A stretch of 64,000 bases of DNA from Andalucia godoyi And28 (taxonomy: Eukaryota; Protista; Jakobida): NCBI GenBank assembly GCA_009859145.1, contig VRVR01000019.1, positions 31,073 through 95,072 of the forward strand, read 5' to 3'. The stretch's first letter is position 1, and every line of letters begins with the position of its first letter. The notes beneath the pieces are model-generated. The model was not told the DNA's origin, did not search any database, and saw nothing but the letters and a program-made list of their open reading frames with translations. This document shows positions 3,144 through 54,633 of the stretch, piece by piece. The position numbers and the translations under genes were made by a program.

Positions 3144-4071
3144 TTGATCAGACTGTTAAGACTACGCTCTCAAACCCAGAATCCGCTAAAACGGAAATTC
3201 ATCACACAAAAAAGCCCCCATCGACCAGCTGCCAGTTTGTAGAGCGGAGTTGATGCCCTCCAAAAGACACTTGACATCCAGGGTCAGAGCAGTCGAAGCT
3301 TGTAGACAATCGGCTGAAAGCGATGAAAACATCGACCATTGCAATTGATGCAGCTCTTTTCCATCTTCTTTCAAATTTTCGTGTGAAGCAGGATCGCGAC
3401 TTCGCCACTTCGCCAATCGCCAATGCTTGATTCACAACCGTTGCCGTTCATGCGGTTTCTGTTGCGTAATAATTCACCAAACCGGAAATATGTTTTGACA
3501 TCATCGAATACGAATTGTTCTCTGTTTGTCGAAGCTACCCGTTGGGACCGGCTTTTAGAGTTTCGAAAGCGCAAGAAGTCTTTTCATTGTTCAATATGGA
3601 ATCGAACCAATGACGCAGTCCCGAAACTTCTGCAAGTCACTCATGCGGACGGATGTCTTTGACGATGGTTCTCAGAAATTGAGCGTGCTCTTTTACAACA
3701 TAGTCATATGCATGAAAGCAAACATGCTCGTTAGCTGGAATTCATCTGTAAAGAGGGACATGTCTCGACTGCGTTCAGCAACACAGTTGGATTTCATTTC
3801 TGTCAAACAAACTTGATAGCAGCCACTCGGTTAGAAGCTTACTGTCGACAATGCTCATTTCTCGCTGCCTTATCAGCATCTTATTGTGGTGCAGCAGTCA
3901 TCGCAATACCATTATTCTGGCGTTTCTTGTCTCGATGTTTCGAAGTGGCAGCAAGTGACAGAGTTTCCAAGTGACAGAGTTTCTTAAAAATTGATCACAA
4001 GATGTTCAACGCTTCAGTGTCCGACACCGGTTCATTTCGCGGATTGACAGTCCGTCTGATGAGTGAGAAAA

Positions 4072-11638: not shown

Positions 11639-14600
11639 CTATTGGGTCATCCACGGTGGTATGCACGCCTGTTGTTGGCCCCGCGCTTCCAACATGCCTT
11701 GCACAAACGCAGCAGCGTCAAACTCTTTGAGGTCCTCATAGTCCTCGGTCGTGCATGAATCGCTCTGGACATACTGGAGGGCAGAAATCTTCCCGCTTTG
11801 CGTACCGCGGTGCAAGGCGACTGAGCGAGCCTCCGACTGGATCGCCTTGAGCATCCACACCCGCGCTTGATCAACAGACGAAAATCGCAATGCTTGCGGA
11901 ATCTCGTAGATTGCAAATCCATCCAGTCCGTTGAATCCAAACGAGTTTCCAGCAACGCAGTAGCGCAAACGATCTCCGGTCTGGAGCAAAGTTCCTGCAC
12001 GGAGCCGAGATGGCTGCGTCGCACCGACATGGGTGCTCTTGGTCAGCGTCGCCGAGAACGGAGAGCTCGCCGTGGAGACTTCCAGATTGTTCAAGCCAGG
12101 ATGCGGCAGTGTGCGGCGATGCATGCCGGACATCAGCAGCAAGACGTCCTCGGTAAGCGTGCCTCCCAGGCAGTGACGCAGGTTGTATTTCGGATGCGAC
12201 TCGAATATCCGGACGTTGTCAATTTGCAAAACTCGCTTCATGCCCGCTTCCAAATTTGCAATTTCCGAAATCCACTGTGCCGTGTGAGAAGTTGAGAAGT
12301 TGAGCTGTTCGGCAAGCCGGCTGCTCCTCTCGAGAATGTCGTTGGACGATGCAACACTCGACCGCAGGTCTTCCACCGTCCGGTTGGTGCGCTGCGCAAC
12401 CCACTGCTGCACGGTTTCATTTTCAGCACCCGCACACGATTGCAGCATGCACCAATCAAGGGCTTCCAGGAACGCGCCAATGGCAAAGGACTCGCTCTGA
12501 ATACTATCCCCTCCCGTCCCGGTGCTGTGGCTGCTCATCATGTAAATATCCTTGAGTGTGACGTCTCCAAACAGTCGGGCGTCCCGAAGCCCGTCCACAA
12601 ACACCTTTCGCTGACCAAATCGCCCGACACCAGTCCACGCACGGCTCTTCCCGTCTGGCTCCAACGTTGGACCATCGCTGCAGCATTCAGAAGCGCGGAT
12701 TACAGCAACCGGACGATACCCGTAGCGCTTGACAGCCCATCCTGTAACAAGCATCATGGCACCGGCGCCGACTCCGATCTGGAACTTTGCCACTCGATCG
12801 CGGTCGTGCGGACGACATTGCCGGTGCGGCGGAAACTCCTTTGCATCTGCCTCCGAAGCTTTCAAAAGCGCACCCACTCGATCAAAGGCATTTTGGCATT
12901 CATGGGTACCGCCATCGTCTGAACACGATACGCACATGACCTTTTGCAACGCTGTCGCACGAAGACGATCGACTTCCAACCGCATCGATTCACTGTTGTA
13001 CCGGCCGATCCGCTTTTCCAAGTCCTCTGCTTTCCTCAGTGCAGACCGCATTTGCTGCACTGCGGTCCACAGCGTCTTCTTTGCCGTGGCACACGCTTGC
13101 GGATCATCCGTCGCAGGACCGGTGGCACCAAACTGGTCGCTGGCAGTGCGACCTGCTGCTGCAGATGGGATGGACAGGACGATGCCAAGCTGGCCCACAT
13201 CCATGCCGCGCATGCAATCCTGCTGCTGTCGTCGGATCGTCTCCAGTGCCCCCATTCCGTTCGAAAACAGCACACACACATTCTGAGCGCCGTGTCGCTC
13301 GGTGACTTCGCGGGGCACCAGTCCCATCATTCTGCAGGCCTCTGTGAGCGCAAGCTGTCCCATCAAGATATTGCGGGCATCATGGTCCGCAATCGACAAG
13401 TTGCCCCCGAGTCGTGACCAGTCCAACGGTGGAATATCCGCGACAATTTGCGGTCCAATCGCGTCGATAATCATTCGACTTAATGATGCACCCTCCTTCC
13501 GTGCAAACACTACCTTTTCTCCCAAAACCGAGCGTTCCTCCAGCTGGTATCCACTCTGCAACAGCCGTTCGACGTGGTGGAATACAGAGACATCAAAAGA
13601 ACTGGACGTTTTCTCAAGTTTGCTTGACAATTCAGTGCGAAATCCGAGCAAGATTTCGTCATCTCCAACGTAGTCGTGGTACCTCCTATACTCGTCCGAC
13701 CGCTGACCCGTTCGCACCAGCATGCGAGGGCCAAGATTGGCTCGAATCTGCTTTCCGAACTTGTGCACAACATCATCCAAAGTCATTCCGTCTTCGACCG
13801 CAAGGCCCATAGCGCGAGCAACGTACAAGACACCCAAGAAAGACGGCCAGTCTTCTTCGGAGCGCAGAAAATGGCTCTGCTGCAAGTCCATCACATTGGC
13901 AAAGGACGATATCGCAGAATCTCCCCATGATGACACCATACCCATCCCGACCACGACAATATCCTCGTCGTCAATCATCGGATACGGTGCGTCCGCTCCG
14001 TCCAGTTCATCAATCCAAAAGCCATAATCGACCAGCGATCGAACCTGTCCAACCTCGAAAACATGGCGCTGTTTCTGCACTTCTGGATTGTCTGCCGCAT
14101 TCTCATTGTCCTCCGCATCGTGCATCTCCAAGGCTGCCATGGCATGGGTACGATTCAGAACATGTTGGATGCCTCCTACCACAACCTGGTCAAGACGCAT
14201 GAACCCGCCATCTGCACAGCGACCGATCACATCCTGGTCACCGTACGATGGGTTGAGAAGGGACACCACGATCGCCGCCATATCCGCTCCATCAAACACC
14301 CACAATGGCGTGTCGAACTCTTCCAACGCAACCGATTCGAGCAAGTCAGAGATGTGCTGGAACGATGACATGATGCCTGTTGGTTTGGCAGCCTTGGACG
14401 AACTCACTGCTGCGACACGAGGAACAACTGCTCCCGTGATCAAAGAGATCTCGCGGAGCATCGGGCGTGAAGAGCCATCGCGCGTGTAGTACAGGCCCTC
14501 TGAGTCCCGGCGCATTGCCCATTGACCAGGAGGCATCGATGCCTTTGCAAAAGGGTAGCTGCCGCTGCCTCCAAGCGCAAACTTGTCGTTCGGACTGGAA

Positions 14601-17600
14601 AAGTTCACGACTGTCAGGACTGGCTGGCTGTGCTCGTCCTCGCCTTCACGGTACCATTGGAGGAGCTTTCCAACGGCGTACCGAAATGCCTCCACCAGCG
14701 AGTACATCACGCTGAAAAAGTCCAGGCGCTGGGAGATGGTCCCGTAGTCTTCCGATGCCATTGCATTCATGATAATGTCTGGTTTCCAATCCAGCTGTTG
14801 AAGCGCGCCAACCAGCAAATCGATGTTGGAATAATTCGGTGAAAACGCAGTGGACGCATGGAGAGACGCCCCACACACTGCCCATTCATCCCTCATCTCG
14901 CGCAGTGTGTCCTCCACATCACCAAAGGTCGATCTTGTGGTAATCCAAACATCGGCTCCCAGACTCAGCAACACACAGGCCGTCGGCTTTCCAATCGTGC
15001 CCAAGCCACCCAGCATCAGAACCCTCTTGCCCTTCAGATCCATGCCGCCGGCAACAAGCTTGGATACATCGGACATCGTGTCCGAATCCACGAAATTGGA
15101 ATCCGACCATTGCGACAACACCATCGGCAAAGGCATCGCACGAGGGCGAGATACCCGAGACCCGTCAGACTGCGACTGGATGGTGAACGGCTCCCACCAG
15201 TGAAGATAAACTGCGCAACCATTCTCGAAGTGCTGCAACAAATCACAGCAAACACGCGATCTTGCGACATCCTGACGACTCACGAAAAACTCTCGCAACG
15301 ACGAAAGCCACGCACACCGGGTTTGGTCCATTTGATGGCTTACGTGGCATACCTTGTATCGATATGCATCCGAATCAAACTCAACGTTCTTCGACGATAC
15401 CTCCTCCATCAACCGCAGGGCATTGGCACAGCATGAGTTCAGGTTGGAATGCGACCAGGCTGCGTGAACCCGAGCGGACCATGAATGGGTCATTGCAGAA
15501 ATAAAGCTGGCTGACAACTCGTGGGACAATTTTTCCAACAGCTTCTTGGCATGATGCGCATCAGCAGTGGCGGCATCGTTTCGGATGATGCACCCTGTGG
15601 ACATGTCGAGAATCACAGAGTCTTGTGTGAGCGGCTTGGAAGGAATCGACGAAGCGCCAGCTGCGATTCGCTCCCGGATGGCGTCGTCCACCAGCTTTTT
15701 CAGTGCATCGACATTCACGGCAGAGACAGGAACCGCCGACACCCCATCCTCCGAGATCCCAAGAGGAGCATCCTCCTGGCGTGCGCAATGAACCGTCAGC
15801 TGTTTCCGGAGGCGATCAAAAAGCGCCGTACGAACTTTCCGCAAGTTATCGGATTCCCGTTTGAATTCTGCTTGCGGCTTCCAGTTTTCCACCCGCTTCA
15901 TCAAATAATCCAGATTCTCTGTCGAGGACAACGGATCGACAAGGCGGCAACAGACCTGCTCGTACAGTGTTTGGAAGACTTCGGACTCCACAGTCACCTT
16001 GCCGTCCTTGGCCAAGTCAAAGAATGTCCGTCCACTGACTTGGTGATCATTCATCAAGGACTTATAGCTGCACGAAACATCTTTCCACGGCTGCTCGCCG
16101 TCCTTCGCAGGAGCAGAAGAAAATGCATGATCCCACAAGCGACACATCAGAGAGAAGATTCCGTCCACAGTGCCTCCCTCTAGTTCTTTTGCATCGTGAT
16201 CCGAGGGCGGCACTGCAATGTTCAGGCGATGTCGAATCTGATTGATTAGACCTGTGATTTCCAGCGAGGACAGGTTCAGGTTTGCTAATCGCTTGGAGGA
16301 AACAATGTCCTTCAGTTTGATGGACTCGTTGGTATCCACCAACGACGTGACGATTGCTGCCCACACCAGTGCGGACGGAGAGCCAATCACAGAAAGGTCG
16401 GACAGCAAAGGTGACAACATCGCGGAACCCTTTGCATCGATTCTACAAGTCGACAGCGCCAAATCGATTGCACACCATTGCAGGGGGCTGATGACGGCTA
16501 GGCTTTGCCGGCTTCCTGCTTGGCTTCGCGCGGGAACAGCAGCGGTAGCGGTAGCGGGAGCAGGAGCAGGAGCAGGAGCAAGAGCAGGAGCAAGGGGAGC
16601 AACCAAGTTAGCGGCAACAGTTGCAATGCTCTTCATCTCAGACACAACGGGAACTTCTGAGGGATGCACAGCGTCGGCAGAAGCGGAGATCAGAGTTTTG
16701 ATCAGTGCCTCAAGTCCAATAGACACCGACGCATGCCTGACTTCGGGATCCTGAGAGAAGATTCGGCGCGCCAAGTTGTTCAAGACAGACGATTCACCAA
16801 ACTCTACAAAGCGCAAGACTCCACTTCGTCGAGCTGTCTTCATCACACCGTCCCATTGGACGGACGCAGAATTCATCCCGACAAGCTCTTCAAGAACGTC
16901 TTCTTTCGTGCGCAAAACACGCAAAGATCCGTCTTCATAGCACGGCTTGACAATGGACAGCATTGGAATCTTGGGATTGGAGATGCTTGTGCTGGAAACA
17001 ATGAAGTCCCTCAGTAGCGCTTCCATCGCAACCAACTTTGACGAGTGAAACGCCACATTACCCGGTAGCACCTTCACGATATAATCAAGCGCGCCAAATC
17101 GCTTCACTGCAGCATGCAGAGCGTCCTCATCCCCGGAGATCACCACTTGGGAATAGTCATGCGAAAGACAGTTGATGTTTGCAATTTCCAACACAGAATG
17201 CGCAAACGCGGGCGATGACGCGACGACCTCTTGCAAGGTGTCCAGAACCACCCCAAGATCCATCAGGGACCTCTTGACAACCGAAGCGATTCTGCCTCGA
17301 CAATGTTCCTTCAAGAGCAGCCCCCGCTTGCGAACAATCCGCAAGCTGTCCGTGAGGGACAGCGCGCCACTGATCACAGCCGCTGTGTACTGACCCAAAG
17401 AGTGTCCGACCACATATGCTGGAGGTGGTGCGCCACGCTCTTGCGCGTTCTCAAAGTATGCCACGCATGTCGCAACAATCGCACAAGACGAATTCTCAAC
17501 TTCGTTCAGATACTCCTCATCCGTACGCCGGGACGACTCCTTGTCGCAGACGATCTTGCAAAGACGAGAATCAATCTCATTCAACGCAGATGTAATACGT

Positions 17601-20600
17601 GCTTTCGCGTGGGGAGAAGTTTCACACAGTGAGGAGGCCATGCCGACTCGCTGAGAAGCATTGCCGACAAACATTGCGATACTGGAAAAAGCACGCAGCA
17701 GCAGGGTCCCCTGCACTTTTCGCTTTCCATCAAGCCGAGAAACAACAACGAAGCTGAAGCATTCGATATTATTCTGCAATAAGCGAGAAAATCGGACATC
17801 CAACAACAGCTGCTCTCCGGGTGCCACAGGGCTCACCACAGCGGTCGATTCTCCGAAACCAACAAACCGGTCAATGTGCTCCAATCCGACAAACCCTTCC
17901 AAGAAGAGATGGCCAACGTGCAACAGCAGCAGCCATCCTTGAACAATAACTCCGTCCGCAAGTCCGCATCGATTTGCGAACCGATCGTCAGTGTGCAACC
18001 ACTGACGATCCAGATAATACGACTCCATCATGCTCCGAGAAACAGAAAACTCCTTGCTGAAAACGTGGACATCGAGCGCATCCGACCCTTCCGTGCACAT
18101 GCATTGCTCCAACGAATGCTGCGCGGGCGGCAGATGCTCAAATAACACTTGGCTGCTGCTGAACTGTGAAGGATCCCAACATCTCGATAAGAACTTCGAA
18201 GACAATGTTGCCACCAGCTCTCCTGCGGGCTCCCGGACCACAACGGTCCATATCTGTACTTCGCGCCCTGCTCGGAGGTCCTGTGCCCGAATTACTTGCG
18301 AGAGAACGCGAACCACATCGCCTTCCGCCAACGCAACCCCTGTGCTTTGGAAGGACTGTCCGGAGTGAACGACTCGTGAAAAGTCAATGGCGAACGGGGA
18401 GGTTAGTGCGCATTGTACCAGCGATTTCCAAGCCAGGTGAAGTGCAAAAAATGGATGCACCAGAGCGCTCTTCAAGCGTCGCACAACAAACCTCTTGGAA
18501 GTCGCGCCCATCGACTTGTGAAACCGCAAGACATCGTCCGCAACGACGCGCTCGGTAGTGCCGTCTGCCATATTGCATCCCCAGCACCCCAAGTATGCGG
18601 AGCGCAGATCATCGATCGTCGAGGAGTAGTTGGTGACATCGACGCGCGTGCGGCCCACGATTGAGCGACGCACAGTGTAGGACCATGTTACTGGAAACAG
18701 CCGGCCAGTGGAATCCATAAGATTCCATTGCTCCAGGAAAACGGAACGATGTTCATCAAAGGTAATTTTGATGAGCTCTCGTTTTTCCTTCGAGGAAACA
18801 GAAATTTCGCGGAGAGTACCATCGCTGATCCTAAGGCAGACGACATCGCCGACAAACGTTCGAACAGCAGAGCGCAGCGGATTGCTCACTTTCCTGACTC
18901 CAAACTCAGAAGCAGAGACGCGCTCTTCTGCGATGCCATCTGCGAGATTAAATGTCTTGCGACCTCCAAAGGAGGAGAGGAAGCGAATCCAGTCGTCCGC
19001 TTCAGGCACTGCAACAATCTCGCAAGACCACTCGTGCGCATCGCTGTGAAGAACGCGCACTCCCTGGAGGCGCTTCGCAGCCAGAACAGGATCCCTTCGT
19101 TGGAGCGCATTCTTGGAGAGCTCGATTTCCATCGCCAGTCGATACGATTTCTGCAGAAATTCCAACGCTCGATCGCGAAGGTCCTCTAGAATTTCGTGAG
19201 CCGGCTTCAGCAGGTACTTGAACGGATCCACGCCCTCTGCTGCCAGCGCCAACATCCCCGACCGAATGGATCGGCCTCCAAGAACATAAGACCGCTGAGG
19301 ATCGATGTCCGGCTCCATGATTGCCCATGTTCGGTATGATCGGAAAAGCGAAATGACCTGCTTCCGGCTGAGCCTCGACAGCGCAGCAGCCAGCTTCTCT
19401 TGATCGGAGGACAGCCAGTAAGGCCACACGTCCGTCAACAACGGCTTGTTTCGGCTCTCGTTCCTCTCTGTCAAACTGGCACACCAAAGGCGATGCAGCA
19501 ACTTTCTCTGAGAAACCGGCTCTCTCAAGAACAGCGTCGAAGTGCGCGCCCCAAGCTCCGCCCCAATTGGCTCGTCGCTCCCTTTCGACTCCAGCATGAC
19601 CGTAAGCTCCAGAAGATCTTCAGAGAACGAATTCCGAATCAGATTGATGGACCTGTCGAACTCGCTCTTACACTGCACAAAGGCATCCGCTCCTTCAAAG
19701 GCGGCTTTTGCAAGAAACTCCTTAACTTGGACCGGAGGAGCAGATTCCAAAGCGACTTGCATCAAACTTCCAAGCTGCACACCACCTCGGACAGGCTGGT
19801 TAGCCATTACCAACAACGCATCAGCAATGGCAGAAGGTGTGCTCTGACCGCCAGTCATGAACCACGGATAGGGCGGCGGCGCAGAATCCAGCAGCGACGC
19901 AGCCAGAGAGTGTCCGTATCGAATCGATGGATTCTGTCGATCAATATTGTGGCCGCCCCCTTCCGCACCCTCTGGAGCGAAGGCAAGCAAATGATGCAAG
20001 GAACGGTCCACCTCGGGATAGATCACATTGCAGAAGTGTTCCCATCTCCTTTCGTTCTCACAGAGAGGGAGAATGGCAATGCCGGCACGCAACAACGGTT
20101 CGTACGTCTCCTTCCAATCCGCCAACGTGATCATGGAAAATGCAACAGACACGATCTTGATGGGAATGCCCTCTTGGACCTTGGCTTGGAGTATGCGCTC
20201 CACCTGCAGCTTGTAGAATCCGCTGGGGTCACCGTGGATGACATTCGCTCCAAAGGGACGTCCCTCTGACCACAAAGGATCGCCCCTACTGTGCAGAAGC
20301 TCCTGTGTGCGACGGTGAATCTCTCGAATCTCTGCAGTCAGTGCTTCCAGATCGCTTCCAAGGGTCGTTGCCGCAAGAAAGCACAAGTATCCGCGAGCCG
20401 CCACAGAAGACACAAGTTCCGCGCGATTGTTTCCTGTCATGGCTGCTACGGCAATGGGAAGTCGGCCGTCGAAGCCGAGGTGATGAAGAAACTCGCTCCA
20501 CAGAGACGGGGTCTCTCCGTCTCCGTCATGAAGGTTCAGCACCTTTTCTACTCTGTTGATGAACTCGCGACGTTGCTCGTCGTCTTGCAAAATCACCGAG

Positions 20601-23092
20601 GAAAGATAAGAAATCGGACCGCTGTACTCACCGTGAATTCGCGGTTCGCCGTGCTTCACTTGATCACAGATTGGACGGCATCCAATCCCCAGAATTTTCT
20701 GAGGATGTCTCCTTTGCAAGAACTCCTCTATGATACCCCGATCGGTTTCATGCAGCAGCGAGGTTCCTTCTGTGCTGTCGAAATGGATCATATTCACGAG
20801 GCACCGATTCAAGCCGTCCGTCGTGATGGCTTCGATAAACTTCCCCACCGCCGTTCCCGGACCGCCATTGAGAACCACAATGGGCTTCTCAAGGAAGCTG
20901 GGTCCCAAAGCACGGAGTGCCGACCACACAGCTATGGGCCAGTCTACTCGGTTCACGCACTGCTCTTCCACCACCACTGCCAGCACCGGATCCAGCAACT
21001 TGCCGTCCTTGAGAATCGCAGGACGTCCCTGCAGAGATCGCATGTCCACTCCATTAGAATTGCAAATGGCGGGCATTCGAAGGCGCTTCATTGATTTGCC
21101 TTCAACGTGCCCCCAGATTTGGCGCAGTGCAGGTTCAACAACCGTGGAGTGAAAGGCCACAGTGGTCGGCAGCACCCGGACTCGAATGTCGGATCTTCCG
21201 AGCTGCTTGACACAGCGGAAAAACTGCTTGATTCCTTCGCAGGTTCCAGAGACGACAACGACGGAAGGAATATCCGCGTTTCCGATCCAACCAGGCGGTG
21301 TCAGTGTTTCCTGGTACACAGAAGACGCCTCCACGTTGATCAGCCCAATTTCAATGACCTCCTCCGCATCCAGCAGTCGACGAACTTCCAGCAAGACGTT
21401 TGTCACTTCTGGCACCGATAGGCCCACAATGCTTGCCATCGACATCTTTCCTGTGAACCGCTCAACAAGGTCAAACTGCTCATCGGATCGTGCCTTGGCA
21501 ATCTGACTCAGCGTCAGGTCATCTCCTGATTCTGGATCCCACCAGCTATCGACCTCCTGCATGTACCGGCCGTTTCTGACGAGCAAATCCAAAACATCGT
21601 CGTCCTCCACAGCCCCAACAGCATGGAGAACGAGCATCTGGCCTTGCGAATGTCCAAGAACAACTGCCTTGGACAGATCATACCCCATCGCCGCCAAGTG
21701 CACATTGATCGCAGCCTGTGTTAGCCCAATTAAAGGCTGCGAAAACTCCGCACGAATGAGTGCGTCTCCATCGTTCTGCATCAAGCCGTCGTCTGTCAGG
21801 ACAAACGATGCGTCGAGGTTGTGGAGTTCGAGGAGTCGCCGCATCTGCGTGTCAATGAAGCGACGCGCGGCAGGAGACGACTTGTGGAGTCTGCGCAGCA
21901 CAGGAACAAACTCGGACGCCTGGCCAGGCAGCGCATAGATGAAGTTCACTTTGTGCTCGTCGATGAGCTGCGCCAGTGCCGGTTTCGGTTCGGAGGCAGC
22001 TTGAAACAGCGAGCTGTCCTTTGCGATCAGGACCCAACCAATCACAAACGTTGTTGCATCTGCATTGTCTGAGGAGCACCACGACGCGGCAGCGGCACAC
22101 CCGTTGCCGCCCTCTCTTTCAACAAGGCACTTCATGGCATCTGCAGAAGATCCAGAGACGTCCAAGACTGCCGACGTGGCTGACAAAGACCGTGCAATGC
22201 GCACATGGTCATACACGTTCGCCATGAAATGCGGCTGTTGTCCTCCACCATAGTACGTAGCCTTGTAGAGACACTCTGCCAAACAGTGTTTCCAGACTGC
22301 ATTGTCATGGTCAAGCTGTGACGAACCGCTATGGTGATCTGCAGACGAGCGCACGACATCAATGCCGATACCAGCAAACGGGCATGTCGACGGAGCGACT
22401 GGAACAACCACCACTGCGATTCCCATGTTCCCATCATCTGCAAACGACGCAAGCAAGTCGCGACCACATTGGAGACTGTGGTTTCCGAATCGAACTGCGC
22501 GCTGGTACTGCGGCCTTGCGCTCGCTCCTTTGAATTCTCGTGCGTACTCGATGTCGCTCCAATTCGGGCTCTCTCCCAGCGACGATGCGAACGCCTCTTT
22601 TAACGCCACCTTGATCGACATTAGCCCTGCGATCCGCGAGTACAGCTTTCCATCTAACACCACCCGCACGCCCCCATCATCTCCACCATCATCATCATCA
22701 TCATCATTCTCATCACCCCCATCTTCAGCCTGACCTCGGTCCTGGCGGTCGGCGAGTCTGGAGCAGTACTCGCCGAGGTTGTCGAGGTTGCGCTCGGTGC
22801 GCGAAAACACCCTGCACAGCGACCGTTTGGGAATCGCAGTCCGTGGCGGCACATGTGCAGCCGCGAGTCCAAACCCGCTAAACGCGACTGCAACAACAAT
22901 CCGCGCGATCCCGAGCGCACTGTCCGGCGGCACAAACGACTGTACATGATGCAGCCCATCTCCCGCACTCGCACTCGCACCGTCGTCTCTGGATGCGATG
23001 CGCGGCCACAGAAGCGCAAACAGCGATGACTTCCACATCTTGCAAACCAGCGCTTCGGCAAGATCGGCGTCCTTTTGCGGCTCGAATGTCAT
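11639..23092 (-). CDS. fas: Single-chain microbial/fungal-type type I fatty acid synthase with N-terminal PPTase (PPT-AT-ER-DH-MPT-ACP-KR-KS), 3817 aa
   Basis: Intronless ORF with ordered motifs: GIGIDVV/LAECLYKA (PPT), LPGQ and GHSQG (AT), EGAEGGGH (FMN-type ER), DRQWLHTD...GVIVQG (MaoC DH), GHSLGQY and AFHS (MPT), LNLSSLEI (ACP), GGLGTIG and SPN...GGSGSYPFAK (KR), QACAT, SHSTGT and RHCLGG (KS Cys-His-His). Confidence 0.92.
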   Translation of the reverse strand: MTFEPQKDADLAEALVCKMWKSSLFALLWPRIASRDDGASASAGDGLHHVQSFVPPDSALGIARIVVAVAFSGFGLAAAHVPPRTAIPKRSLCRVFSRTERNLDNLGEYCSRLADRQDRGQAEDGGDENDDDDDDGGDDGGVRVVLDGKLYSRIAGLMSIKVALKEAFASSLGESPNWSDIEYAREFKGASARPQYQRAVRFGNHSLQCGRDLLASFADDGNMGIAVVVVPVAPSTCPFAGIGIDVVRSSADHHSGSSQLDHDNAVWKHCLAECLYKATYYGGGQQPHFMANVYDHVRIARSLSATSAVLDVSGSSADAMKCLVEREGGNGCAAAASWCSSDNADATTFVIGWVLIAKDSSLFQAASEPKPALAQLIDEHKVNFIYALPGQASEFVPVLRRLHKSSPAARRFIDTQMRRLLELHNLDASFVLTDDGLMQNDGDALIRAEFSQPLIGLTQAAINVHLAAMGYDLSKAVVLGHSQGQMLVLHAVGAVEDDDVLDLLVRNGRYMQEVDSWWDPESGDDLTLSQIAKARSDEQFDLVERFTGKMSMASIVGLSVPEVTNVLLEVRRLLDAEEVIEIGLINVEASSVYQETLTPPGWIGNADIPSVVVVSGTCEGIKQFFRCVKQLGRSDIRVRVLPTTVAFHSTVVEPALRQIWGHVEGKSMKRLRMPAICNSNGVDMRSLQGRPAILKDGKLLDPVLAVVVEEQCVNRVDWPIAVWSALRALGPSFLEKPIVVLNGGPGTAVGKFIEAITTDGLNRCLVNMIHFDSTEGTSLLHETDRGIIEEFLQRRHPQKILGIGCRPICDQVKHGEPRIHGEYSGPISYLSSVILQDDEQRREFINRVEKVLNLHDGDGETPSLWSEFLHHLGFDGRLPIAVAAMTGNNRAELVSSVAARGYLCFLAATTLGSDLEALTAEIREIHRRTQELLHSRGDPLWSEGRPFGANVIHGDPSGFYKLQVERILQAKVQEGIPIKIVSVAFSMITLADWKETYEPLLRAGIAILPLCENERRWEHFCNVIYPEVDRSLHHLLAFAPEGAEGGGHNIDRQNPSIRYGHSLAASLLDSAPPPYPWFMTGGQSTPSAIADALLVMANQPVRGGVQLGSLMQVALESAPPVQVKEFLAKAAFEGADAFVQCKSEFDRSINLIRNSFSEDLLELTVMLESKGSDEPIGAELGARTSTLFLREPVSQRKLLHRLWCASLTERNESRNKPLLTDVWPYWLSSDQEKLAAALSRLSRKQVISLFRSYRTWAIMEPDIDPQRSYVLGGRSIRSGMLALAAEGVDPFKYLLKPAHEILEDLRDRALEFLQKSYRLAMEIELSKNALQRRDPVLAAKRLQGVRVLHSDAHEWSCEIVAVPEADDWIRFLSSFGGRKTFNLADGIAEERVSASEFGVRKVSNPLRSAVRTFVGDVVCLRISDGTLREISVSSKEKRELIKITFDEHRSVFLEQWNLMDSTGRLFPVTWSYTVRRSIVGRTRVDVTNYSSTIDDLRSAYLGCWGCNMADGTTERVVADDVLRFHKSMGATSKRFVVRRLKSALVHPFFALHLAWKSLVQCALTSPFAIDFSRVVHSGQSFQSTGVALAEGDVVRVLSQVIRAQDLRAGREVQIWTVVVREPAGELVATLSSKFLSRCWDPSQFSSSQVLFEHLPPAQHSLEQCMCTEGSDALDVHVFSKEFSVSRSMMESYYLDRQWLHTDDRFANRCGLADGVIVQGWLLLLHVGHLFLEGFVGLEHIDRFVGFGESTAVVSPVAPGEQLLLDVRFSRLLQNNIECFSFVVVSRLDGKRKVQGTLLLRAFSSIAMFVGNASQRVGMASSLCETSPHAKARITSALNEIDSRLCKIVCDKESSRRTDEEYLNEVENSSCAIVATCVAYFENAQERGAPPPAYVVGHSLGQYTAAVISGALSLTDSLRIVRKRGLLLKEHCRGRIASVVKRSLMDLGVVLDTLQEVVASSPAFAHSVLEIANINCLSHDYSQVVISGDEDALHAAVKRFGALDYIVKVLPGNVAFHSSKLVAMEALLRDFIVSSTSISNPKIPMLSIVKPCYEDGSLRVLRTKEDVLEELVGMNSASVQWDGVMKTARRSGVLRFVEFGESSVLNNLARRIFSQDPEVRHASVSIGLEALIKTLISASADAVHPSEVPVVSEMKSIATVAANLVAPLAPALAPAPAPAPATATAAVPARSQAGSRQSLAVISPLQWCAIDLALSTCRIDAKGSAMLSPLLSDLSVIGSPSALVWAAIVTSLVDTNESIKLKDIVSSKRLANLNLSSLEITGLINQIRHRLNIAVPPSDHDAKELEGGTVDGIFSLMCRLWDHAFSSAPAKDGEQPWKDVSCSYKSLMNDHQVSGRTFFDLAKDGKVTVESEVFQTLYEQVCCRLVDPLSSTENLDYLMKRVENWKPQAEFKRESDNLRKVRTALFDRLRKQLTVHCARQEDAPLGISEDGVSAVPVSAVNVDALKKLVDDAIRERIAAGASSIPSKPLTQDSVILDMSTGCIIRNDAATADAHHAKKLLEKLSHELSASFISAMTHSWSARVHAAWSHSNLNSCCANALRLMEEVSSKNVEFDSDAYRYKVCHVSHQMDQTRCAWLSSLREFFVSRQDVARSRVCCDLLQHFENGCAVYLHWWEPFTIQSQSDGSRVSRPRAMPLPMVLSQWSDSNFVDSDTMSDVSKLVAGGMDLKGKRVLMLGGLGTIGKPTACVLLSLGADVWITTRSTFGDVEDTLREMRDEWAVCGASLHASTAFSPNYSNIDLLVGALQQLDWKPDIIMNAMASEDYGTISQRLDFFSVMYSLVEAFRYAVGKLLQWYREGEDEHSQPVLTVVNFSSPNDKFALGGSGSYPFAKASMPPGQWAMRRDSEGLYYTRDGSSRPMLREISLITGAVVPRVAAVSSSKAAKPTGIMSSFQHISDLLESVALEEFDTPLWVFDGADMAAIVVSLLNPSYGDQDVIGRCADGGFMRLDQVVVGGIQHVLNRTHAMAALEMHDAEDNENAADNPEVQKQRHVFEVGQVRSLVDYGFWIDELDGADAPYPMIDDEDIVVVGMGMVSSWGDSAISSFANVMDLQQSHFLRSEEDWPSFLGVLYVARAMGLAVEDGMTLDDVVHKFGKQIRANLGPRMLVRTGQRSDEYRRYHDYVGDDEILLGFRTELSSKLEKTSSSFDVSVFHHVERLLQSGYQLEERSVLGEKVVFARKEGASLSRMIIDAIGPQIVADIPPLDWSRLGGNLSIADHDARNILMGQLALTEACRMMGLVPREVTERHGAQNVCVLFSNGMGALETIRRQQQDCMRGMDVGQLGIVLSIPSAAAGRTASDQFGATGPATDDPQACATAKKTLWTAVQQMRSALRKAEDLEKRIGRYNSESMRLEVDRLRATALQKVMCVSCSDDGGTHECQNAFDRVGALLKASEADAKEFPPHRQCRPHDRDRVAKFQIGVGAGAMMLVTGWAVKRYGYRPVAVIRASECCSDGPTLEPDGKSRAWTGVGRFGQRKVFVDGLRDARLFGDVTLKDIYMMSSHSTGTGGDSIQSESFAIGAFLEALDWCMLQSCAGAENETVQQWVAQRTNRTVEDLRSSVASSNDILERSSRLAEQLNFSTSHTAQWISEIANLEAGMKRVLQIDNVRIFESHPKYNLRHCLGGTLTEDVLLLMSGMHRRTLPHPGLNNLEVSTASSPFSATLTKSTHVGATQPSRLRAGTLLQTGDRLRYCVAGNSFGFNGLDGFAIYEIPQALRFSSVDQARVWMLKAIQSEARSVALHRGTQSGKISALQYVQSDSCTTEDYEDLKEFDAAAFVQGMLEARGQQQACIPPWMTQ

Positions 23093-23608
23093 TGTTTAAA
23101 ATTTTAAATAAAATAATAATGAAAGAGTTGGCAAATGAAATGATTATGAAAATGGTATTTATTTTATCATTAATAATATATAAAAAAGAAAAGAAAGGAA
23201 AACGGAAAGGAAAAGAAGCTCACTTCGCTTGCATAATATGTGTGACAGCGGAAATTCAAAAGAGGGAACAATAAGCGGAGGAAGCGGGTCGGGGATTTCG
23301 GGTGATTTTTCGCGATTTCGCCTTGTTTGGTTGCTGATTTTATCCACGTGTTGAGGGTGTTCGGTGCAAAAGGTGCGAGATGCGAGACTCAAGTCGGGAA
23401 TTGAGGATGCGGTCCAAAAACCACTTGGAATCTGTCGTACGGATACGAGCATCGGAGCTGCACATCAATCAAAGCACACGGACGAAGCCCGCCGGCATCC
23501 AAGCAAACCCATCAATACGAACAAATTTGGAAAAACGTTCAGGAGCCATCGGGAAACACGCCACCCAACCCGCCTTCCCCCCCTCTTCTCGAGCATCTAC
23601 TGTACGCA

Positions 23609-24084
23609 TCATCTTTTCGAGTGGGAGCGGACTGCGGAGCCCGTGGGTGCAATGGTGCTTGCGAGTCCGACGGGCGGTTTGGCCGCTCGTACTTCTGCGG
23701 CCCGCGTTCCTCCAGCAGTTCCCATCCCCTTCTTGAGCCCACCATGGACCGGCGCGATCTTTGCAGTCTTGCACGCAGGAATGTGCTTTTCTGCACTGAC
23801 GGCGTTGAACTTGCGGCCGCACGAAGGACATGCAACCCGGTCGTCCTGCGCCTTGATCATCTCGGCAACAGTCACACGCTCCTCGGCTGTCAGTCCGTCG
23901 TTCGCACCGCTTTCCGTCCCCTTTTGCCCGCGAATCATCGACAGGAACTGTGCTCGCTGCGCCTTCCACTTTGGAACAGCCTTCAGAGCCTTGCCTTCGC
24001 CGGATCCACCGCCTCCCGATCCAAAACCAGGTGGAACTTGGCCTCCTGCTGAAGACGATGCCTGCTGCTGCGGTGGTTTCCTGG

Positions 24085-24123
<39 letters not shown>

Positions 24124-25112
24124 GCAGTGCCGACGCTGATCCTGAACCTGATCCTGATCCTGATCCTGATGCGAGTGCTGCCTTTCGCGCTTCGAGACGC
24201 GCCTTCTTTTCTTCGGCCTCCTTTTCCTTTTGAACACGCGCAAGAAACTGTGCGGCTTCATCGCCTGCTGCTCCTGCCACACGGATCGCCGTCATGTCAA
24301 ACGCCTGTCGCTTCGACCCGAACACCTTTTGACACACTTTCTGATGCTTGGCAAGCCGGTCTGCCGCAAACGACCGTCCGCATTGACCACACTGCACAAG
24401 ATCAAGCGGTCCGTCTCCTTCCTCGGCATACTCGGACGGTTGCCCATATGCGTTTGCATTGGTATTGGAGTTGAAACTAGCGTGGGACTGGGAGTTGGAG
24501 TGCGAGTATCCGCCATGTCGACTGGACGATTCTTCTGGCTCCCGGTCATACTCGTCCTCTTCATACCGCGCATACTGCGACTGCGAACGTTGCTGGGGCT
24601 GGGGCTGGGGCTGGGGCTGTGGTTTTGCTTGTGGCTGGGCCCTGGGCTCCACCACCTTGGGCTCCACCTTGGGCTGGGTCTTGGGCTGGGTCTTGGGCTT
24701 TGCAGCAGGAGGCGGTGCGTCGTACGACGGCGGCACATCGTCGACGACATTCGACCACTCGGGCCGCGATGCAAGCCCAGCTGATGGCCCTCTTGCACTT
24801 GCTCGCGACCTTGCCGTCGCACCGGTTGCACTAGTTGTTGCACTGGCTGTTGCATTCGTACTTGTGACAGTGGCGGAGGGGGCGGAGGGGGCGGAGGACC
24901 CGTCATCCGAGTTCCATTCGGGTCGACGCGCCAATCGAGACTGATTCTCCTTGCCACTGGATCTCTTGGCCACGACATTCGGCTTCCTCCGCTCTTCGTA
25001 CGCATCCTCATTCTCGTACCCATTCTCACTCGCATACTCGCTCCCATTCTCGTTCTCGTACCCATATTCTTGCGCATGTCCGCGCCCCGAGTCATGGTAC
25101 TGCGAATGGGTA

Positions 25113-25151
<39 letters not shown>

Positions 25152-25972
25152 GGTGCATACGCCTCGACTTGATGCGGCGTCGGAACCGGCATCGGATACC
25201 CACGAAGCCTCGATGCAGACCTCTCGCTCGCACTGGATGACACCGCACCGCCGTTCCCACTGCCATTCACGCTCCCGTTCGCATTGACATTGACGTTCAG
25301 ATTCAGGACGGAGAGTGGCAACGGCCGGCCAAAAGAGTGCGGCGTCGACAGCAGCAGCCCATTTCCGCCGCCTGTGCTCACAATCGACACGGTCGCCGAG
25401 GAAGACGAGGACTCCCATGGAAGCTTTCCGCCGAGCGTGCGTGGGCGCTGCCGCGACTGGGAGGACGCCGAGGGCCGCTTCACCGCCTCCTGCAGCTCGG
25501 CCAGTCTGCTGCTGCTCCCCATTGCACCCCCAGACCCACCCGCAGACGCGGACGGCGGCAGATGAGATGCGGCATGGTGGCTGTTGCCAACGCTGGTCTG
25601 CGATCGGCTGTAGTCCGAGGCGATCGCATGGTAGTCAATGTCGCCGGGTGTCGAACGCTCTGCCATGTACTCGTGCAGCGCGTCGCGGGGACCCTGCGGG
25701 TGCTGCGATTGATGCTGGGACTGCTGCTTGGCGTGCGCAGGGCGAATGGACGGCGGTTGAGACTGCGCGCGCGGGAAGTGGGAACCCATCAGATCGTCCA
25801 GCGCATCCGCTTCTCTAGCATCACTTGATGCTGCTGCCGCAGCCGGTGGATGGCTCCCGTACGACGGGTCCAGCTTGCGTTGGTCCCGAAGTTCCTTGGC
25901 GCGCTCCAGGGCTTGCCGACGGCGCTCTGCATACTCGGCTGCCTGAGCAGACCCGCGTGTCGACAAGGACAT
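23609..25972 (-). CDS. ZC2HC1: C2HC zinc-finger protein (ZC2HC1/FAM164-like), 787 aa, with long low-complexity N-terminus
   Basis: Two zf-C2HC_2-type motifs: CGQCGRSFAADRLAKHQKVC and CPSCGRKFNAVSAEKHIPAC. Poly-Q and poly-N tracts are present. The first ATG is at 25972; the track start is GTG. Confidence 0.8.
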
Positions 25973-26222
25973 TTCCACACTCTCGAAAGGGGGGAGGGGT
26001 GCTACCTGTATGAAGGGAGAATAAAATAAAATAAATAGATGTACAAAAAAATATATATGTTAAAAGAAGAAATCAGTGAAGTGAATGAAAAATAAAAACA
26101 AAAAAAAACGAGTTCGAAAGAGGGTTTGATTGGTGCCTTTTGTTTTGTGTTTTCTTTTATTTTTTTGATAACGATCGAGAGCACTACAGCTGGCACAAGA
26201 CTGGCGGGGAATTTCTCCTTTT

Positions 26223-29200
26223 TTACAGAACAGAACATGCGGTTGATGCTGGAGCTGCGTTGTGCTCGAGATGCTGGATTCTGGCCTCAAGCGCTTCGAC
26301 TCGGCTTTTGAGGGCCTTGATGGCCTCTGTGAGGAGCGGCACGAGCTCGGGGATGTTTACAGCCGGCAGATCGCGGGACTTCATCACCTCGGCATAGTCG
26401 TTCTTCTCGGCCGTGCGCATATCTCGCTGCGCCTTCATCCGTTGCGCAAACAGCAGCTCCTCCTCCTCCTCCAGCTCCTCCTCCTCCAGCTTCTTCTCCT
26501 CCATCTTCTTCTTCTCGCTTGCTGTGGCCGTGGCCGCAACATTCGCAAACCGATTCTCGTTGGTGGAGCTTGATGGAAGCTTCTTCTTGCGCGAGACGGC
26601 CCAGGGAGCCGCAAGCTCGAGTTCCTCGGCAATGAACCCGACGTGCTGCTCATCAGTATCAGTAAGGCGGTACGTCACGCCTTGCATTTTCGCGACGGTG
26701 TCCAGCGCGTGCTCTGCAGAAATGTCATGAATGTCGTGCTTGATATGGACCGAGGACCAGATTGCCCAGCCTCCACGCGTCCAGATGATGCCGTCTTGAC
26801 CAACTGCGACGCGTGCATCCCAGGTGCTGGTGTCGGCGCGCCAGAGGAAAAAGGAAAAGTCAAGATCAGGGTCAATCGCAGGTGCCCAGATCGTCGGTCC
26901 GTTCGCATCTTCCCACCGCAGCGGCTTCGCGACCCCCGAGTTGTCAAGGCGCAGGACAGATGTCGGCTGGATGTGGTCTGTGGACGACAGGTACAGCACA
27001 GAGTCGCTCGTGGAGATCTGCGAAAGAGAGGACGACGTGATGTTCAGTGTACCAAGCATCAGCGTGTTCAGGCCTCCCGAAAACGAAAACACCGAATTCG
27101 GAGACGTGACGGAGAACGACAGCGCCGGCGCTGCGATGGTCGTCCGAGCACTTGACGGTGAATACGAGAGGAGCAGCGCCGCGGACGAGATCAGTGCAAG
27201 TGTGGACGAGGAGGTGGAAATCGTAGAGGACGCCGCATCCAGGCGCAGCGTGCTCGACGAAGAGGGCGTCCGAACATCCAGCGCACCAGACGTCGTGAAC
27301 ACCGAGACATGCGTGGCATTCAGATACAACGGGTCTGAAGGACTGGCAATCGTCGGGGTGGTGCTGCTCACGGTGCTCGCGGTCAGGAACAGGCGAGAGG
27401 AAACGTACACGCGGTTCGAATCGAGAATGATGTTGTTGGATGCCGTCGAGGTCGCAATGCGCAGGTCGGCAAGGACGGTTCGCGAGCGCAGAGTGTCAAA
27501 CAGCGCAGTCGACCCCATGAGGTACGGCGCGTTGATCAGTACGGCACCGGGAGACTGCAGCGAGATGTTGGAGGATGTCGACTGCAGCGCAAGGTCCAGC
27601 GATGATGAAAACTGCGCAGAAGCCCCGGAAACCTGGAACACGAAACTCCCGCTCACGGGCGCAGCAGAGAAGAGATGCGTCGACGGAGCAAGGCGTACTG
27701 CACCAGTCGACGACGCATCCAGAGTCACGTCGCCCGTCGTTGAAACGAGACGCATCGTCGCCATCGACACTTCGGATGCTTCGAGCGTCAGCACCGAAAG
27801 CGTCGATGTATTGCCAGAGCGGATCGTGAGAGCCTGGTTCGACCGCAGCACGATCGGGCTAGGCAGCGGTGAAGAAGAAGGTGGCACAAGGTCGATGAGC
27901 AGTGCTTGGAGATACAGCGTGCCAGACCCAGGCTCAATGCTCAGCGATGCCGATCCCAGTGGCACAGCAATACGCACAATCGAGTTTGCCGTCGCTGTGG
28001 TGAACGAAAACAGTGTTGCAGACGTGATCAAGGTCCCAGAGACAGGATCAATTGCAATGGGATCCATGGAGGAGTTGGACGCGATCCGCAGGCCATGTGA
28101 TGCCTCCAAAAGCCCTGCGTTTGGCGCAATGCGCACCTGGTGCGACGGGTCTGTGGTGGAGAGAAAGAACGCCGAATCAAGAATGCTGAGTGTCGTGGTG
28201 AAAGGAAGCAAAGACAGGCAAGACCCGGCACCTAGCGCGGTGCACATCGTGAACTGCGAGCGATCGGACGTGATTTGTGATCCTGAAATCGCAGTCTCAA
28301 ATCGAATAAACGATGAAGAACCGGAATCCGATACGAGCGAAAAGTCATTTGCGTACAGCATTGTTGACGAGCCAATCGTGAGCGAAACATCCGGGCTCGA
28401 CGTCGTGACATGGACCTCGGGTTCAGAGGACGCAATCGTCGCCAGGACAGGATCCAGTCCAAGAGTTGCGCCACCAGTCTGGGTCTGTCGGAGCAGCAGC
28501 TTCTGCGAAACCAGCGTCGTCGATCCGTCCAATTCAAGTCGCAGAGTCGAAAACGGGTTGGAAATGACAACGGGAGTGACAGAATCGTGCGAAACAATCG
28601 ATGCATTTCGGTGAATCTGAAGCATTCCCATGTCCAAAACATCTGCCCACACGGAAAACTGGTCCGTCGAACGAAGAATCGATTGCGCTGCCCCAAGGGA
28701 CAAGAAAGGCGACGACACAGAGTCTCCAAACTGCGTAATGAACGCATGCGATGCTTGTATGTACACGCTCGACGATGCATTCGACACATGCAAGTTTTCG
28801 CGAATCCACACATCGGTGGACAGCGCTACGCCTTGCAGCGAGGACAGCACAAGCTGCCGCGGACTCGTCACTTGCTGCACATCGAGAATCAGGGTTCCGG
28901 ACGCTGGAGTGATCTGAATGTCGCCGCCTGCATCCGAGCTTGTGGAAATGTTGAGAACGCCAGCCGTTGCGTTGAAGAGCGGAAACGCCCATTCGTTGCT
29001 TGGGACGTATGGCGCGGTTTCATTGCATGTACACACGTACTGAATGTTGTCTGATGGATCCGGGTCGACCCATGAGGACGATGAGTCGTTGGCGCTGCAC
29101 GACGAGATGTTACACAGCGCAAACGAACCGTTTGTTACATGGCTCCAGAGAGTGGAAGACAGGTTCGCGAGCAACCAGTCATAATCGATGGATCCCGTGC

Positions 29201-30845: not shown

Positions 30846-31167
30846 TTTATCCAACGCCAAATGATAGATGTACTGGTTTTTCCCTCTTCTTTCAAAGGTT
30901 GTTTCCGAAATGGAAAGAGAAATCAGAAACAGAAAGGAATTAGGGGTCAATTGATGGGTTTGAAGGAACTCGGCCACTTCCAAAAGTCGAAAAACCCCCC
31001 CGATTGGCCTTTCCCTCAATAGTCCAAATACCCGCTACGGTTACTGACCCGGATGATCATTGACATCGTCTGATGCCGAGCTGTGTATGAGTTCCGGTAG
31101 ATGCGTAACAGGACCATTCGCTTGATGCTTGAGACTTACGGTGTCGCAAATTCTGAATTTCAATTTT

Positions 31168-43789: not shown

Positions 43790-44284
43790 TACTGGTATTC
43801 TGCCCAAATCGTGCGGCCCACTCTCTCGATCACTCGCTTAAACTTATGAATCACTCGGCTCCACTATTAATGCTAATAACAGCAACAATCCTTATTAGCT
43901 TTTAAAAATAATAATAATATCAAAAAACAGTAATAACATAAATTGAAGACGAGTCCTTTGGTTTTTGGAAGGATATTGAAAAACGGGGGGGGGGGGAAAT
44001 CTCACGAATTCCGCCTGTCGTATGCGATGCCCATGGAGGCTGAAAACAGGGGCATTGACATGGCTTGAAAGGTCCAGCCTCAAGCACTACTTTTTTTCAG
44101 AATCTACTGTAAGTCAGGGGGGGTGGGGCGGTGAACTACGGTGCGTTTAAAGGTCGAAGCAGCATTTAGTGTTTCTTATTTTCATTATTTCCACAAGGTT
44201 TTTTTCTGTATGTTGTTGTGGTGTAGAAGATAGTAGGAATAGAAAAAGAAGAAGAAACAGCAGTGGTAGTGATTTTGGAGGGAG

Positions 44285-51681: not shown

Positions 51682-51913
51682 TTACCGCTTCTTCTTTCCG
51701 ACTCTTTCCGCTCGTCTTTTGACATGCTTTGGAATCTTCTCTTTTCGCTTGTCTCGTTTGGATTCCTTCACAGCTTTCTTGTTTTGTCGACGCAGCTCCC
51801 GGACTTCCTCGGCGGAAACGGTTTTTTTCTCCTTCCAGGAATCCGCAGCGGCTTCTTCATCGTCATCATCATCATCATCATCATCATCGTCATCATCATC
51901 ATCGTCGTCATTA

Positions 51914-51945
<32 letters not shown>

Positions 51946-53343: not shown

Positions 53344-53635
53344 TCTTTCTTCTTTAACCCCTCCCGGCACTGCTGTCGACTGTCTTTCTTGATCAAATCA
53401 AAGGCCAAAGAAGGAAAAACAAAAACAAAAAGGGGAAAATCGGAAAAGAAGAAGAAGAAAGGTCAACAGACTGTAGATGAGCGAATTTCCTGGAGAGAGG
53501 AGAAAGTAGACTCAATTGAGTGTGGGGAAGTGCAAAAGAAAGAGCGAAACGCCACGATCTACGGTTGCGGTAGAAGCGTGCGGGAGTTTTTTTTTCCCCT
53601 TTTGTGTTTTTCATACCGTTTTCATTTTCTTTTTT

Positions 53636-54262: not shown

Positions 54263-54362
54263 TCCAAGCAAAACGAGCCACACCCTTTGATGAGGAACAA
54301 GGATAATAATAATAACAACAATAATAATAATAATAGCAGAACTGGAAAAAGTCAAACAGGCT

Positions 54363-54367
<5 letters not shown>

Positions 54368-54445
<78 letters not shown>
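54368..54445. repeat. (GA)39 microsatellite
   Basis: Perfect dinucleotide run in the divergent intergenic region between the LC4-like gene and RPS18. Confidence 0.97.
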
Positions 54446-54448
<3 letters not shown>

Positions 54449-54633
54449 GCGGTTGGAGAAAAGAAAAGGACGAAGCAAACTGCTGTACGGATTGTTGTCG
54501 GGCACTTTTATTACCCTTTTGTCCCTTTGTGCGTGGGAAATGTCGACCGGATAATTAAGCGTAATTAAGGACCCTCCCGGTTTAAGGGAAGGTCAAGAGG
54601 CAAAGGGAAAACAAGACGGGTCCGGTTCTGTTC

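Follow-up and report, generated by a model that had tools for sequence, protein, structure and literature searches.

A predicted tandem AcpS-like phosphopantetheinyl transferase domain at the N-terminus of a fungal/CMN-type fatty acid synthase from Andalucia godoyi

Fatty acid synthases (FASs) of the CMN group (Corynebacterium, Mycobacterium, Nocardia) depend on a separate AcpS protein, and the phosphopantetheinyl transferases (PPTases; PPT for the domain) integrated into polyketide synthases (PKSs) stand at the C-terminus of an animal-FAS/PKS-type architecture, not of a fungal-type barrel FAS. Such built-in PPTases are carried by some PKSs in Streptomyces (PMC4103896). In fungal-type FAS, phosphopantetheinylation must precede barrel closure; the fungal PPT, located on the barrel perimeter, has to form a dimer or trimer to be active, and the yeast PPT, active only as a multimer, acts before barrel formation, which ties priming to assembly (PMC6972935). 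A different arrangement is described here, in a stretch of 64,000 nucleotides, hereafter the window, from the jakobid protist Andalucia godoyi And28 (GenBank assembly GCA_009859145.1, contig VRVR01000019.1, positions 31,073 to 95,072 of the forward strand). On the minus strand of the window, the open reading frame (ORF) at 11639-23092, read from the ORF list and its translation, encodes a megasynthase of 3,817 amino acids (aa), in which a PPT-like domain is followed by domains in the order acyltransferase (AT), an enoyl reductase (ER), a dehydratase (DH), a malonyl/palmitoyl transferase (MPT), an acyl carrier protein (ACP), a ketoacyl reductase (KR) and a ketoacyl synthase (KS). With a probability put at roughly 0.6, aa ~60-365 of this protein form an integrated, two-half pseudo-dimeric PPTase that primes the ACP of its own enzyme.

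The block in question (aa ~60-365; 21,998-22,915, minus strand) consists of two consecutive AcpS-like half-domains placed before the first AT, and falls at the 5' end of the ORF, of which the span 22010-23092 encodes aa 1-361. The N-half (aa ~60-232; 22397-22915, minus) is a complete AcpS-like half-domain that appears catalytically degenerate, and is marked by FSRTER..DNLGEY, SRIAGLMSIK, WSDIEYAR and SFADDG; the C-half (aa ~233-365; 21998-22396, minus) is a shortened AcpS-like half-domain with a putative active site. An earlier reading of the DNA letters without database searches (the sequence-only reading) had proposed two such half-domains in the first ~360 aa, and the AcpS profile match, the exclusively PPTase structural matches and the conservation among orthologues set out below bear this out. 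The peptide strings on which it relied are all present between aa 94 and 278, namely RVFSRTER (aa 94-101), RIAGLMSIKVALKEA (aa 153-167), WSDIE (aa 178-182), LASFADD (aa 214-220), IAVVVV (aa 225-230), GIGIDVV (aa 241-247) and WKHCLAECLYKA (aa 267-278). A loop of the N-half also contains an acidic low-complexity insert, GQAEDGGDENDDDDDDGGDDGG (aa 120-141; 22670-22735, minus), which is confined to the window protein, being missing from all orthologues in two alignments, and is modelled with a low predicted local distance difference test score (pLDDT).

Relatives were collected in an exhaustive phmmer search of 1.84 billion representatives, with aa 1-1200 as the query. They include P0001 (3,660 aa, EukProt), identical to aa 158-3817 of the window protein; P0002 (4,157 aa, Logan) and P0003 (4,193 aa, NCBI HSA60421.1, from a metagenome-assembled genome (MAG) labelled 'bacterium'), which are 54% and 43% identical to it overall; and the fragments P0015, P0009 and P0004, which make up an orthologue in pieces on one frameshifted ENA contig (L003). 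Pattern scans contributed two extra loci, L001 in an uncultured Pseudomonadota MAG and L002 in a JGI metagenome. Neither aa 1-400 nor aa 1-1100 drew any match in a word-indexed homologue search, in which the profile as query recovered the fragment P0015 only. The same N-terminal fusion occurs in P0002, P0003, L001 and L002, and three of the block-carrying orthologues lie on bacterial contigs. Six orthologues have in common the motifs F-(S/T)-x-R-E..D-N-L-G-x-Y (invariant save for NNLG in L001 and DNLGM in L002), S-R-(I/L/V)-A-G..K, W-x-(D/E)-(I/V)-E-(Y/F)-x-R and F-(A/T)-D-(D/E)-G..G-x-A in the N-half, followed by G-x-D and H-x-x-x-E-x-x-Y-K-x-T-Y-x-G-G in the C-half; the last two are the columns invariant in the C-halves of five orthologues, and invariance clusters there. 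Identity to P0002 and P0003, respectively, amounts to 52% and 42% over aa 60-157, 44% and 43% over aa 158-232, and 39% and 36% over aa 233-365, compared with 46-63% and 39-48% in the catalytic domains.

The relationship to PPTases emerges from profile comparisons. Searched against the PDB, a six-member profile of the block gave eight sub-threshold matches, seven of them to AcpS, in alignments in which one AcpS-like unit ends (..F-A-D-D-G..A-V-V-V-E) immediately ahead of the start of the next (G-I-V-S-I-G-x-D-I). In hhalign, the same profile matched Bacillus subtilis AcpS alone with P=1.7e-4 over 94 columns, a score that none of 300 shuffled AcpS sequences reached, and an 11-member AcpS alignment, nine members of which came from annotated plasmid genes, with a probability of 94.8% and P=5.3e-8 over 103 columns, spanning aa ~89-236 of the window protein and residues 23-121 of AcpS. 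By this profile match, the N-half is demonstrably a sequence homologue of AcpS. Alignment to 13 Sfp sequences (P=0.095, 34 columns) and to Sfp alone (8 columns) was not significant in either case. BLASTP of the N-half against the C-half found no similarity, and therefore any duplication that gave rise to the pair must be ancient.

Structure prediction extends the comparison to both halves. The AlphaFold model of the window sequence itself is poor (pLDDT 48.9) and serves as a weak pointer, its top 33 Foldseek matches all being PPTases. The block of P0003 was modelled with a pLDDT of 83.5 and a predicted template-modelling score of 0.85, and all of its top 50 Foldseek matches in the PDB are PPTases, so that the predicted fold is the one anticipated by the sequence-only reading. 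The best matches are Sfp-type enzymes (PptAb, MuPPT, PcpS and PptT; E 1.4e-6 to 1e-5, probability 1.00), whose alignments of ~290 columns cover both halves with template-modelling (TM) scores of 0.44-0.53 for PptAb, PcpS and PptT; AcpS covers one half with TM 0.6-0.7, and the fungal FAS alpha chain of C. thermophilum (7q5s_A) appears at rank 47. As modelled, the block is an alpha+beta PPTase fold of two lobes related by a pseudo-twofold, like the group II enzymes, with a C-half made of a strand, a long helix, two strands, a helix and two further strands. The description as Sfp/EntD-like, offered by the sequence-only reading, therefore stands for topology, where Foldseek aligns both halves, and falls for family membership, where P=0.095 for Sfp is set against 5.3e-8 for AcpS. 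Filing the domain under the Sfp/EntD family was rejected on this alignment, on V247, and on the missing Trp and Lys-before-Glu described below. What the profiles and the model indicate is a tandem AcpS-like pseudo-dimeric PPTase, AcpS-like in sequence and Sfp-like in topology, and not a member of the Sfp/EntD family.

One explanation considered was that a linker or docking region carries short motifs that resemble those of PPTases by chance, as single-sequence searches stay at noise level; phmmer of aa 1-400 against the PDB, for example, returned only noise, with AcpS at E=1.3. This explanation, to which next to no probability was assigned, is already refuted by the profile-profile P of 5.3e-8, the restriction of Foldseek matches at E~1e-6 to PPTases, the 0/300 shuffles and the conservation in six orthologues.

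The predicted catalytic residues are gathered in the C-half. D245, in GIGID (codon 22358-22360, minus), is invariant in all orthologues, stands at the end of the first strand of the C-half and is a predicted Mg2+ ligand equivalent to D8 of AcpS and D107 of Sfp, the GIGxDI segment pairing with the AcpS N-terminus and with Sfp GIDIE. In the bacterial orthologues this motif reads G-I-G-x-D-I-x-x-x-R-R-F and resembles the AcpS G-I-G-x-D-I-x-E-x-x-R-I. The segment E273-C-L-Y-K277 (22262-22276, minus) holds the predicted catalytic Glu and Lys in the spacing E-x-x-x-K, as in E58/K62 of AcpS and E151/K155 of Sfp; both residues are invariant in six orthologues and, in the orthologue model, lie on the long helix immediately after the G-x-D strand, and the G-G turn following this helix resembles the AcpS K-A-x-G-x-G. 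The equivalence of D245, E273 and K277 is drawn from the motif and from the topology as predicted; a significant C-half alignment does not underlie it. The second Mg2+ ligand, of the D-x-E motif, is replaced in the window protein by V247, which is counted as tolerated because group II PPTases can dispense with the second ligand of their Asp-Xxx-Glu triad, and Val occurs there naturally in plant and fungal enzymes (PMC4103896).

The N-half presents the opposite picture. It has lost the Asp8 position of AcpS, has V165 (Ala in orthologues) at the position of Glu58, and E166 of the window protein is Arg in the orthologues. The sequence-only reading was right that the first lobe is degenerate and that the second has kept its acidic residues, and erred in taking the Glu of 'ALKEA' for the PPTase Glu, since this residue is off register by four positions and its counterpart in the orthologues is Arg; the degeneracy of the first half is thereby greater than had been supposed, and the observation is not weakened. 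What the N-half retains is S-F-A-D-D-G (aa 216-221; 22430-22447, minus), a strand motif corresponding to the AcpS '(S/T)-L-(T/A)-(H/D)-(E/D)' and the Sfp 'N-x-S-H-S-G', in which D219 is invariant, and which HMMER and hhalign place opposite SLTHEG of M. tuberculosis AcpS and LSHsG of the Sfp family. Reading the His-to-Asp difference in F-A-D-D-G as a sign of inactivity was rejected: His is the residue of Bacillus AcpS and of Sfp, and Asp is natural in proteobacterial AcpS, as in TLADE (E. coli), SLSDD (Bradyrhizobium) and TLTDE.

Several observations weigh against an active enzyme, most of them in the C-half. Its Asp and Glu are separated by 20-28 residues, as opposed to ~44-50 in Sfp and AcpS, so that two to three helices are missing, and the helices between Asp and Glu in AcpS help to bind ACP. 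It has neither the Lys before Glu (K-E-A/S) nor the Trp/Phe of the Sfp motif. Its significant alignment to PPTases is limited to G-I-G-x-D, the remainder matching by topology; a forced global hhalign of the C-half against AcpS gave a probability of 1% in an unreliable register and was not used. Pfam scans matched no PPTase family in any member, even at E<=10, whether the query was the N-terminal 400 aa, one of four sub-segments (run with the acidic insert as well as without it) or any of the six orthologue domains. Finally, the confident model is that of P0003, an orthologue sharing ~33% identity with the window protein over this domain, and not of the window sequence.

These features invite the alternative that the block is a PPTase-fold pseudoenzyme, a relic retained for scaffolding, for assembly or oligomerisation, or for docking of the ACP, which a separate PPTase encoded elsewhere in the genome would activate. 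It accommodates the short and very divergent C-half with its missing K-E and W/F parts, as well as the silence of Pfam, and it draws on relatives that do without the block: P0006 (3,831 aa, NCBI), P0008 (1,842 aa, Deltaproteobacteria MAG, QQR81718.1) and P0153 (3,905 aa, Logan; grouped with P0008) are ~25% identical to the window protein and have no N-terminal block, and in the sister clade represented by P0006 and P0153 a trans-acting PPTase evidently suffices. Yet the residues held invariant in the C-half are exactly G-x-D and E-x-x-x-K, kept in six orthologues despite 22-40% identity over this half, which would not be expected of a structural role, and the N-half provides an example of function lost within the family, both acidic residues having gone. 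A pseudoenzyme is accordingly considered unlikely, though it deserves to be kept in mind.

The remainder of the chain provides the presumed substrate. Across the window protein and its orthologues, Pfam domains follow the order AT, NMO (ER), FAS_meander, FAS1_DH_region, MaoC, AT (MPT), PP-binding, KR and KS; the window protein itself has a strong Acyl_transf_1 match at 1808-2048 and weak matches to NMO, MaoC, PP-binding and KS, and the orthologues add FAS_meander, FAS1_DH_region, KR and adh_short without changing the order. A five-member family profile matched fungal FAS beta (6e-48 to 2e-42) and the mycobacterial FAS-I of M. tuberculosis and M. smegmatis (2e-41 to 1e-38), in both cases collinearly over DH-MPT. 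Domain order and profile matches together mark the window protein as what is, on sequence grounds, a divergent fungal/CMN-type FAS with a flavin mononucleotide (FMN)-type ER and a double-hotdog DH, in agreement with the AT-ER-DH-MPT-ACP-KR-KS order that the sequence-only reading had placed after the PPT. The first AT (20693-21940, minus) begins at ~aa 385, directly C-terminal of the PPT-like domain, with PGQASEF at 389 and GHSQG at 480-484, and is supported by matches over aa ~370-515 in the exhaustive phmmer search and by two Acyl_transf_1 stretches in Pfam. As a separate observation, the MPT domain (16733-17695, minus; aa 1800-2120) scores better against a free-standing bacterial FabD (2cuy, 3.6e-26) than against fungal MPT, as would fit a clade placed deeply or among bacteria.

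The ACP domain (16103-16495, minus) has a weak PP-binding match at 2258-2298 and a predicted attachment site at S2276 (codon 16265-16267), whose motif LNLSSLEI lines up with the canonical L-D-M-D-S-L-A-I of P0003, itself with a PP-binding match. At the other end of the chain, the last KS motif, GNSFGFNG, lies at ~3715-3722, and the ~95 mostly helical residues that remain are too short for a PPT and contain no PPT motifs, as the sequence-only reading had held; the orthologues terminate at the same place. The conserved ACP serine and the lack of a PPT after KS were counted in favour of a self-priming enzyme, as a PPT is needed and the chain holds no other. As a side observation, the sister clade that has no PPT-like block (P0006, P0008/P0153) carries an apparently helical extension of ~200 residues C-terminal of KS.

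In the proposed mechanism, the N-half would form the complementary wall of a coenzyme A (CoA) pocket, including the invariant F-A-D-D-G strand, and the C-half would contribute D245 and E273 for Mg2+ binding and catalysis, together with K277, giving a complete single active site between the lobes of one polypeptide. With CoA and Mg2+ bound, phosphopantetheine would be transferred to S2276 of the ACP, ~2,000 residues downstream, either in cis or between nascent chains, ahead of barrel closure. Because the pseudo-dimer lies within one chain, it would do without the multimerisation on which the yeast PPT at the C-terminus depends. In this scheme, according to which the enzyme probably attaches its own cofactor arm through its predicted N-terminal domain, the binding of CoA, the catalysis, the choice of the ACP as target and the timing are all inferred. 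The PPT-like domain is presumably part of a hexameric FAS, the product of which could be a specialised lipid instead of fatty acids.

An active domain might instead serve mainly other carrier proteins in trans, as a general cellular PPTase. Its location at a free N-terminus, ~2,000 residues from the ACP, would suit such a role, and Sfp-type enzymes are often promiscuous (PMC4103896). Against this, every occurrence of the domain that was found is in a fusion to this FAS clade, with no stand-alone relative among the 1.84 billion representatives searched, and the fact that bacteria and a eukaryote inherit it together with the ACP speaks for a dedicated pair, so that a general PPTase is judged improbable, and priming of the enzyme's own ACP is preferred.

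All of the above presupposes that the N-terminal region is translated. The EukProt model P0001 begins at M158 (22619-22621, minus), which raises the alternative that translation starts there or later, the upstream frame being fortuitous; moreover, the AG that comes first after the proximal polypyrimidine tract is situated just within the ORF and, if used for trans-splicing, could move the start to M19. The evidence is nevertheless heavily on the side of an upstream start. M158 falls in the middle of the conserved helix SRIAGLMSIK of the N-half, whereas M1 and M19 both precede the PPT domain; aa 60-157 are 52% and 42% identical to P0002 and P0003, and are thus conserved like the catalytic domains, and their GC content by codon position is that of the rest of the coding sequence, from which the DNA upstream of the ORF differs. 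A late start is therefore regarded as very improbable. Since M158 cuts a conserved helix, and the stretch upstream of it is conserved with coding composition, the EukProt model is, by this sequence comparison, N-terminally truncated by at least ~100 conserved residues, and the public gene model needs correction at its N-terminus.

Upstream of the ORF, the non-coding region 23093-23290 (minus) carries polypyrimidine tracts, and ~120 nt of A+T-rich sequence then lead up to the first ATG. The large ORFs of the window are all intronless and all on the minus strand (11639-23092, 23609-25978, 26223-31019, 32375-43807, 45195-48662, 51682-53370, 53636-54505 and 55416-63989) and, together with the polypyrimidine and A+T-rich intergenic sequence at 23093-23608, this looks like a polycistronic, trans-splicing-type layout resembling that of kinetoplastids. 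The window content is eukaryotic, and includes a RIO1 kinase, an EF-hand protein, UVB_sens_prot, C2HC zinc fingers and giant TIG-domain proteins. IPT/TIG domains are found in two giant ORFs, at 32375-43807 (minus; 3,810 aa) and 55416-63989 (minus; at least 2,857 aa), and the ORF at 26223-31019 (minus; 1,598 aa) contains a domain of the Peptidase_S74 (endosialidase chaperone) type. At 34-38 kb, GC skew and AT skew are both strong, which probably reflects repetitive surface-protein coding sequence, and an Rfam scan of the 64-kb window gave no match.

The PPT-FAS fusion characterises a clade to which uncultured Proteobacteria also belong, and is not unique to this genome; the window gene therefore probably derives from horizontal transfer, in one direction or the other. 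In L001, the neighbouring genes are ordinary bacterial ones (a chorismate-binding enzyme, a class IV aminotransferase, ThiE and a ZIP transporter). Two independent bacterial loci, L001 (6248-7810, plus) and L002 (618-2624, plus), have a gene for a PALP (pyridoxal-phosphate-dependent) enzyme immediately upstream of the FAS, and genes for PlsC-type acyltransferases lie upstream of it in L003 (736-3018); this conserved PALP/PlsC synteny may hint at the product or pathway. An extra N-terminal region precedes the PPT domain in P0003 (aa 1-190), P0002 (aa 1-215), L001 and L002. These ~190-215 residues are partly common to the sister clade that has no PPT-like block, and the window protein has only ~60 residues there.

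As the tandem appears to be derived from AcpS, it suggests a second route to a two-lobed PPTase, from AcpS and not from the Sfp family. A broader evolutionary scenario, put forward tentatively and at somewhat less than even odds, is that self-priming arose twice in barrel-type FAS, here by tandem duplication of a proteobacterial-type AcpS and its N-terminal fusion, independently of Sfp, giving a single-chain active site independent of assembly, and that the gene in its entirety was afterwards transferred between bacteria and a eukaryote. Circular permutation of a fungal KS-PPT | AT junction was also considered as the origin and set aside, the tandem construction making an independent AcpS-derived fusion more likely.

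The clade is of wider interest in several respects. It links fungal/CMN-type FAS to uncultured Proteobacteria and a protist, and bears on the bacterial origin of fungal FAS and on the horizontal transfer of a 12-kb gene. An N-terminal, single-chain pseudo-dimer would emerge first in translation and need no partner to be complete, which offers a new system for testing whether priming or assembly comes first. If the proposed activity is true, a self-priming single-chain FAS would also be convenient for heterologous expression. No description of a FAS with a PPT before the AT was found in the open-access full-text literature, and the arrangement is best appreciated against its closest known counterparts.

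AcpS itself (group I) is a homotrimer of ~120-aa subunits with three active sites at its interfaces, whereas the window domain comprises two diverged, fused copies, of which one at most would be active. The Sfp-type enzymes (Sfp, EntD, PcpS, PptT/PptAb and human AASDHPPT), which provide the best whole-domain structural matches to the P0003 model, share with it a two-lobed, pseudo-symmetric build, with a silent first lobe and G-x-D and E-x-x-x-K in the second; they differ in being free-standing, and the window domain does not have their second D-x-E ligand, W-x-x-K-E or ~20 residues of the C-lobe. Type I PKSs with a built-in PPTase, such as the enediyne PKSE, likewise hold a carrier-protein activation domain within a megasynthase. 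CMN FAS-I, the nearest relative built as a single chain, has the same AT-ER-DH-MPT-ACP-KR-KS order with no C-terminal PPT, from which the window clade departs in its N-terminally fused putative PPTase and in a sequence so divergent that most Pfam matches are weak. The integrated PPT of fungal FAS alpha (group III) is also an AcpS-like PPT inside a barrel-type FAS polypeptide, which in the fungal enzyme primes its own ACP; the fungal PPT is a single unit at the extreme C-terminus, after KS, whereas that of the window protein is N-terminal and built of tandem halves.

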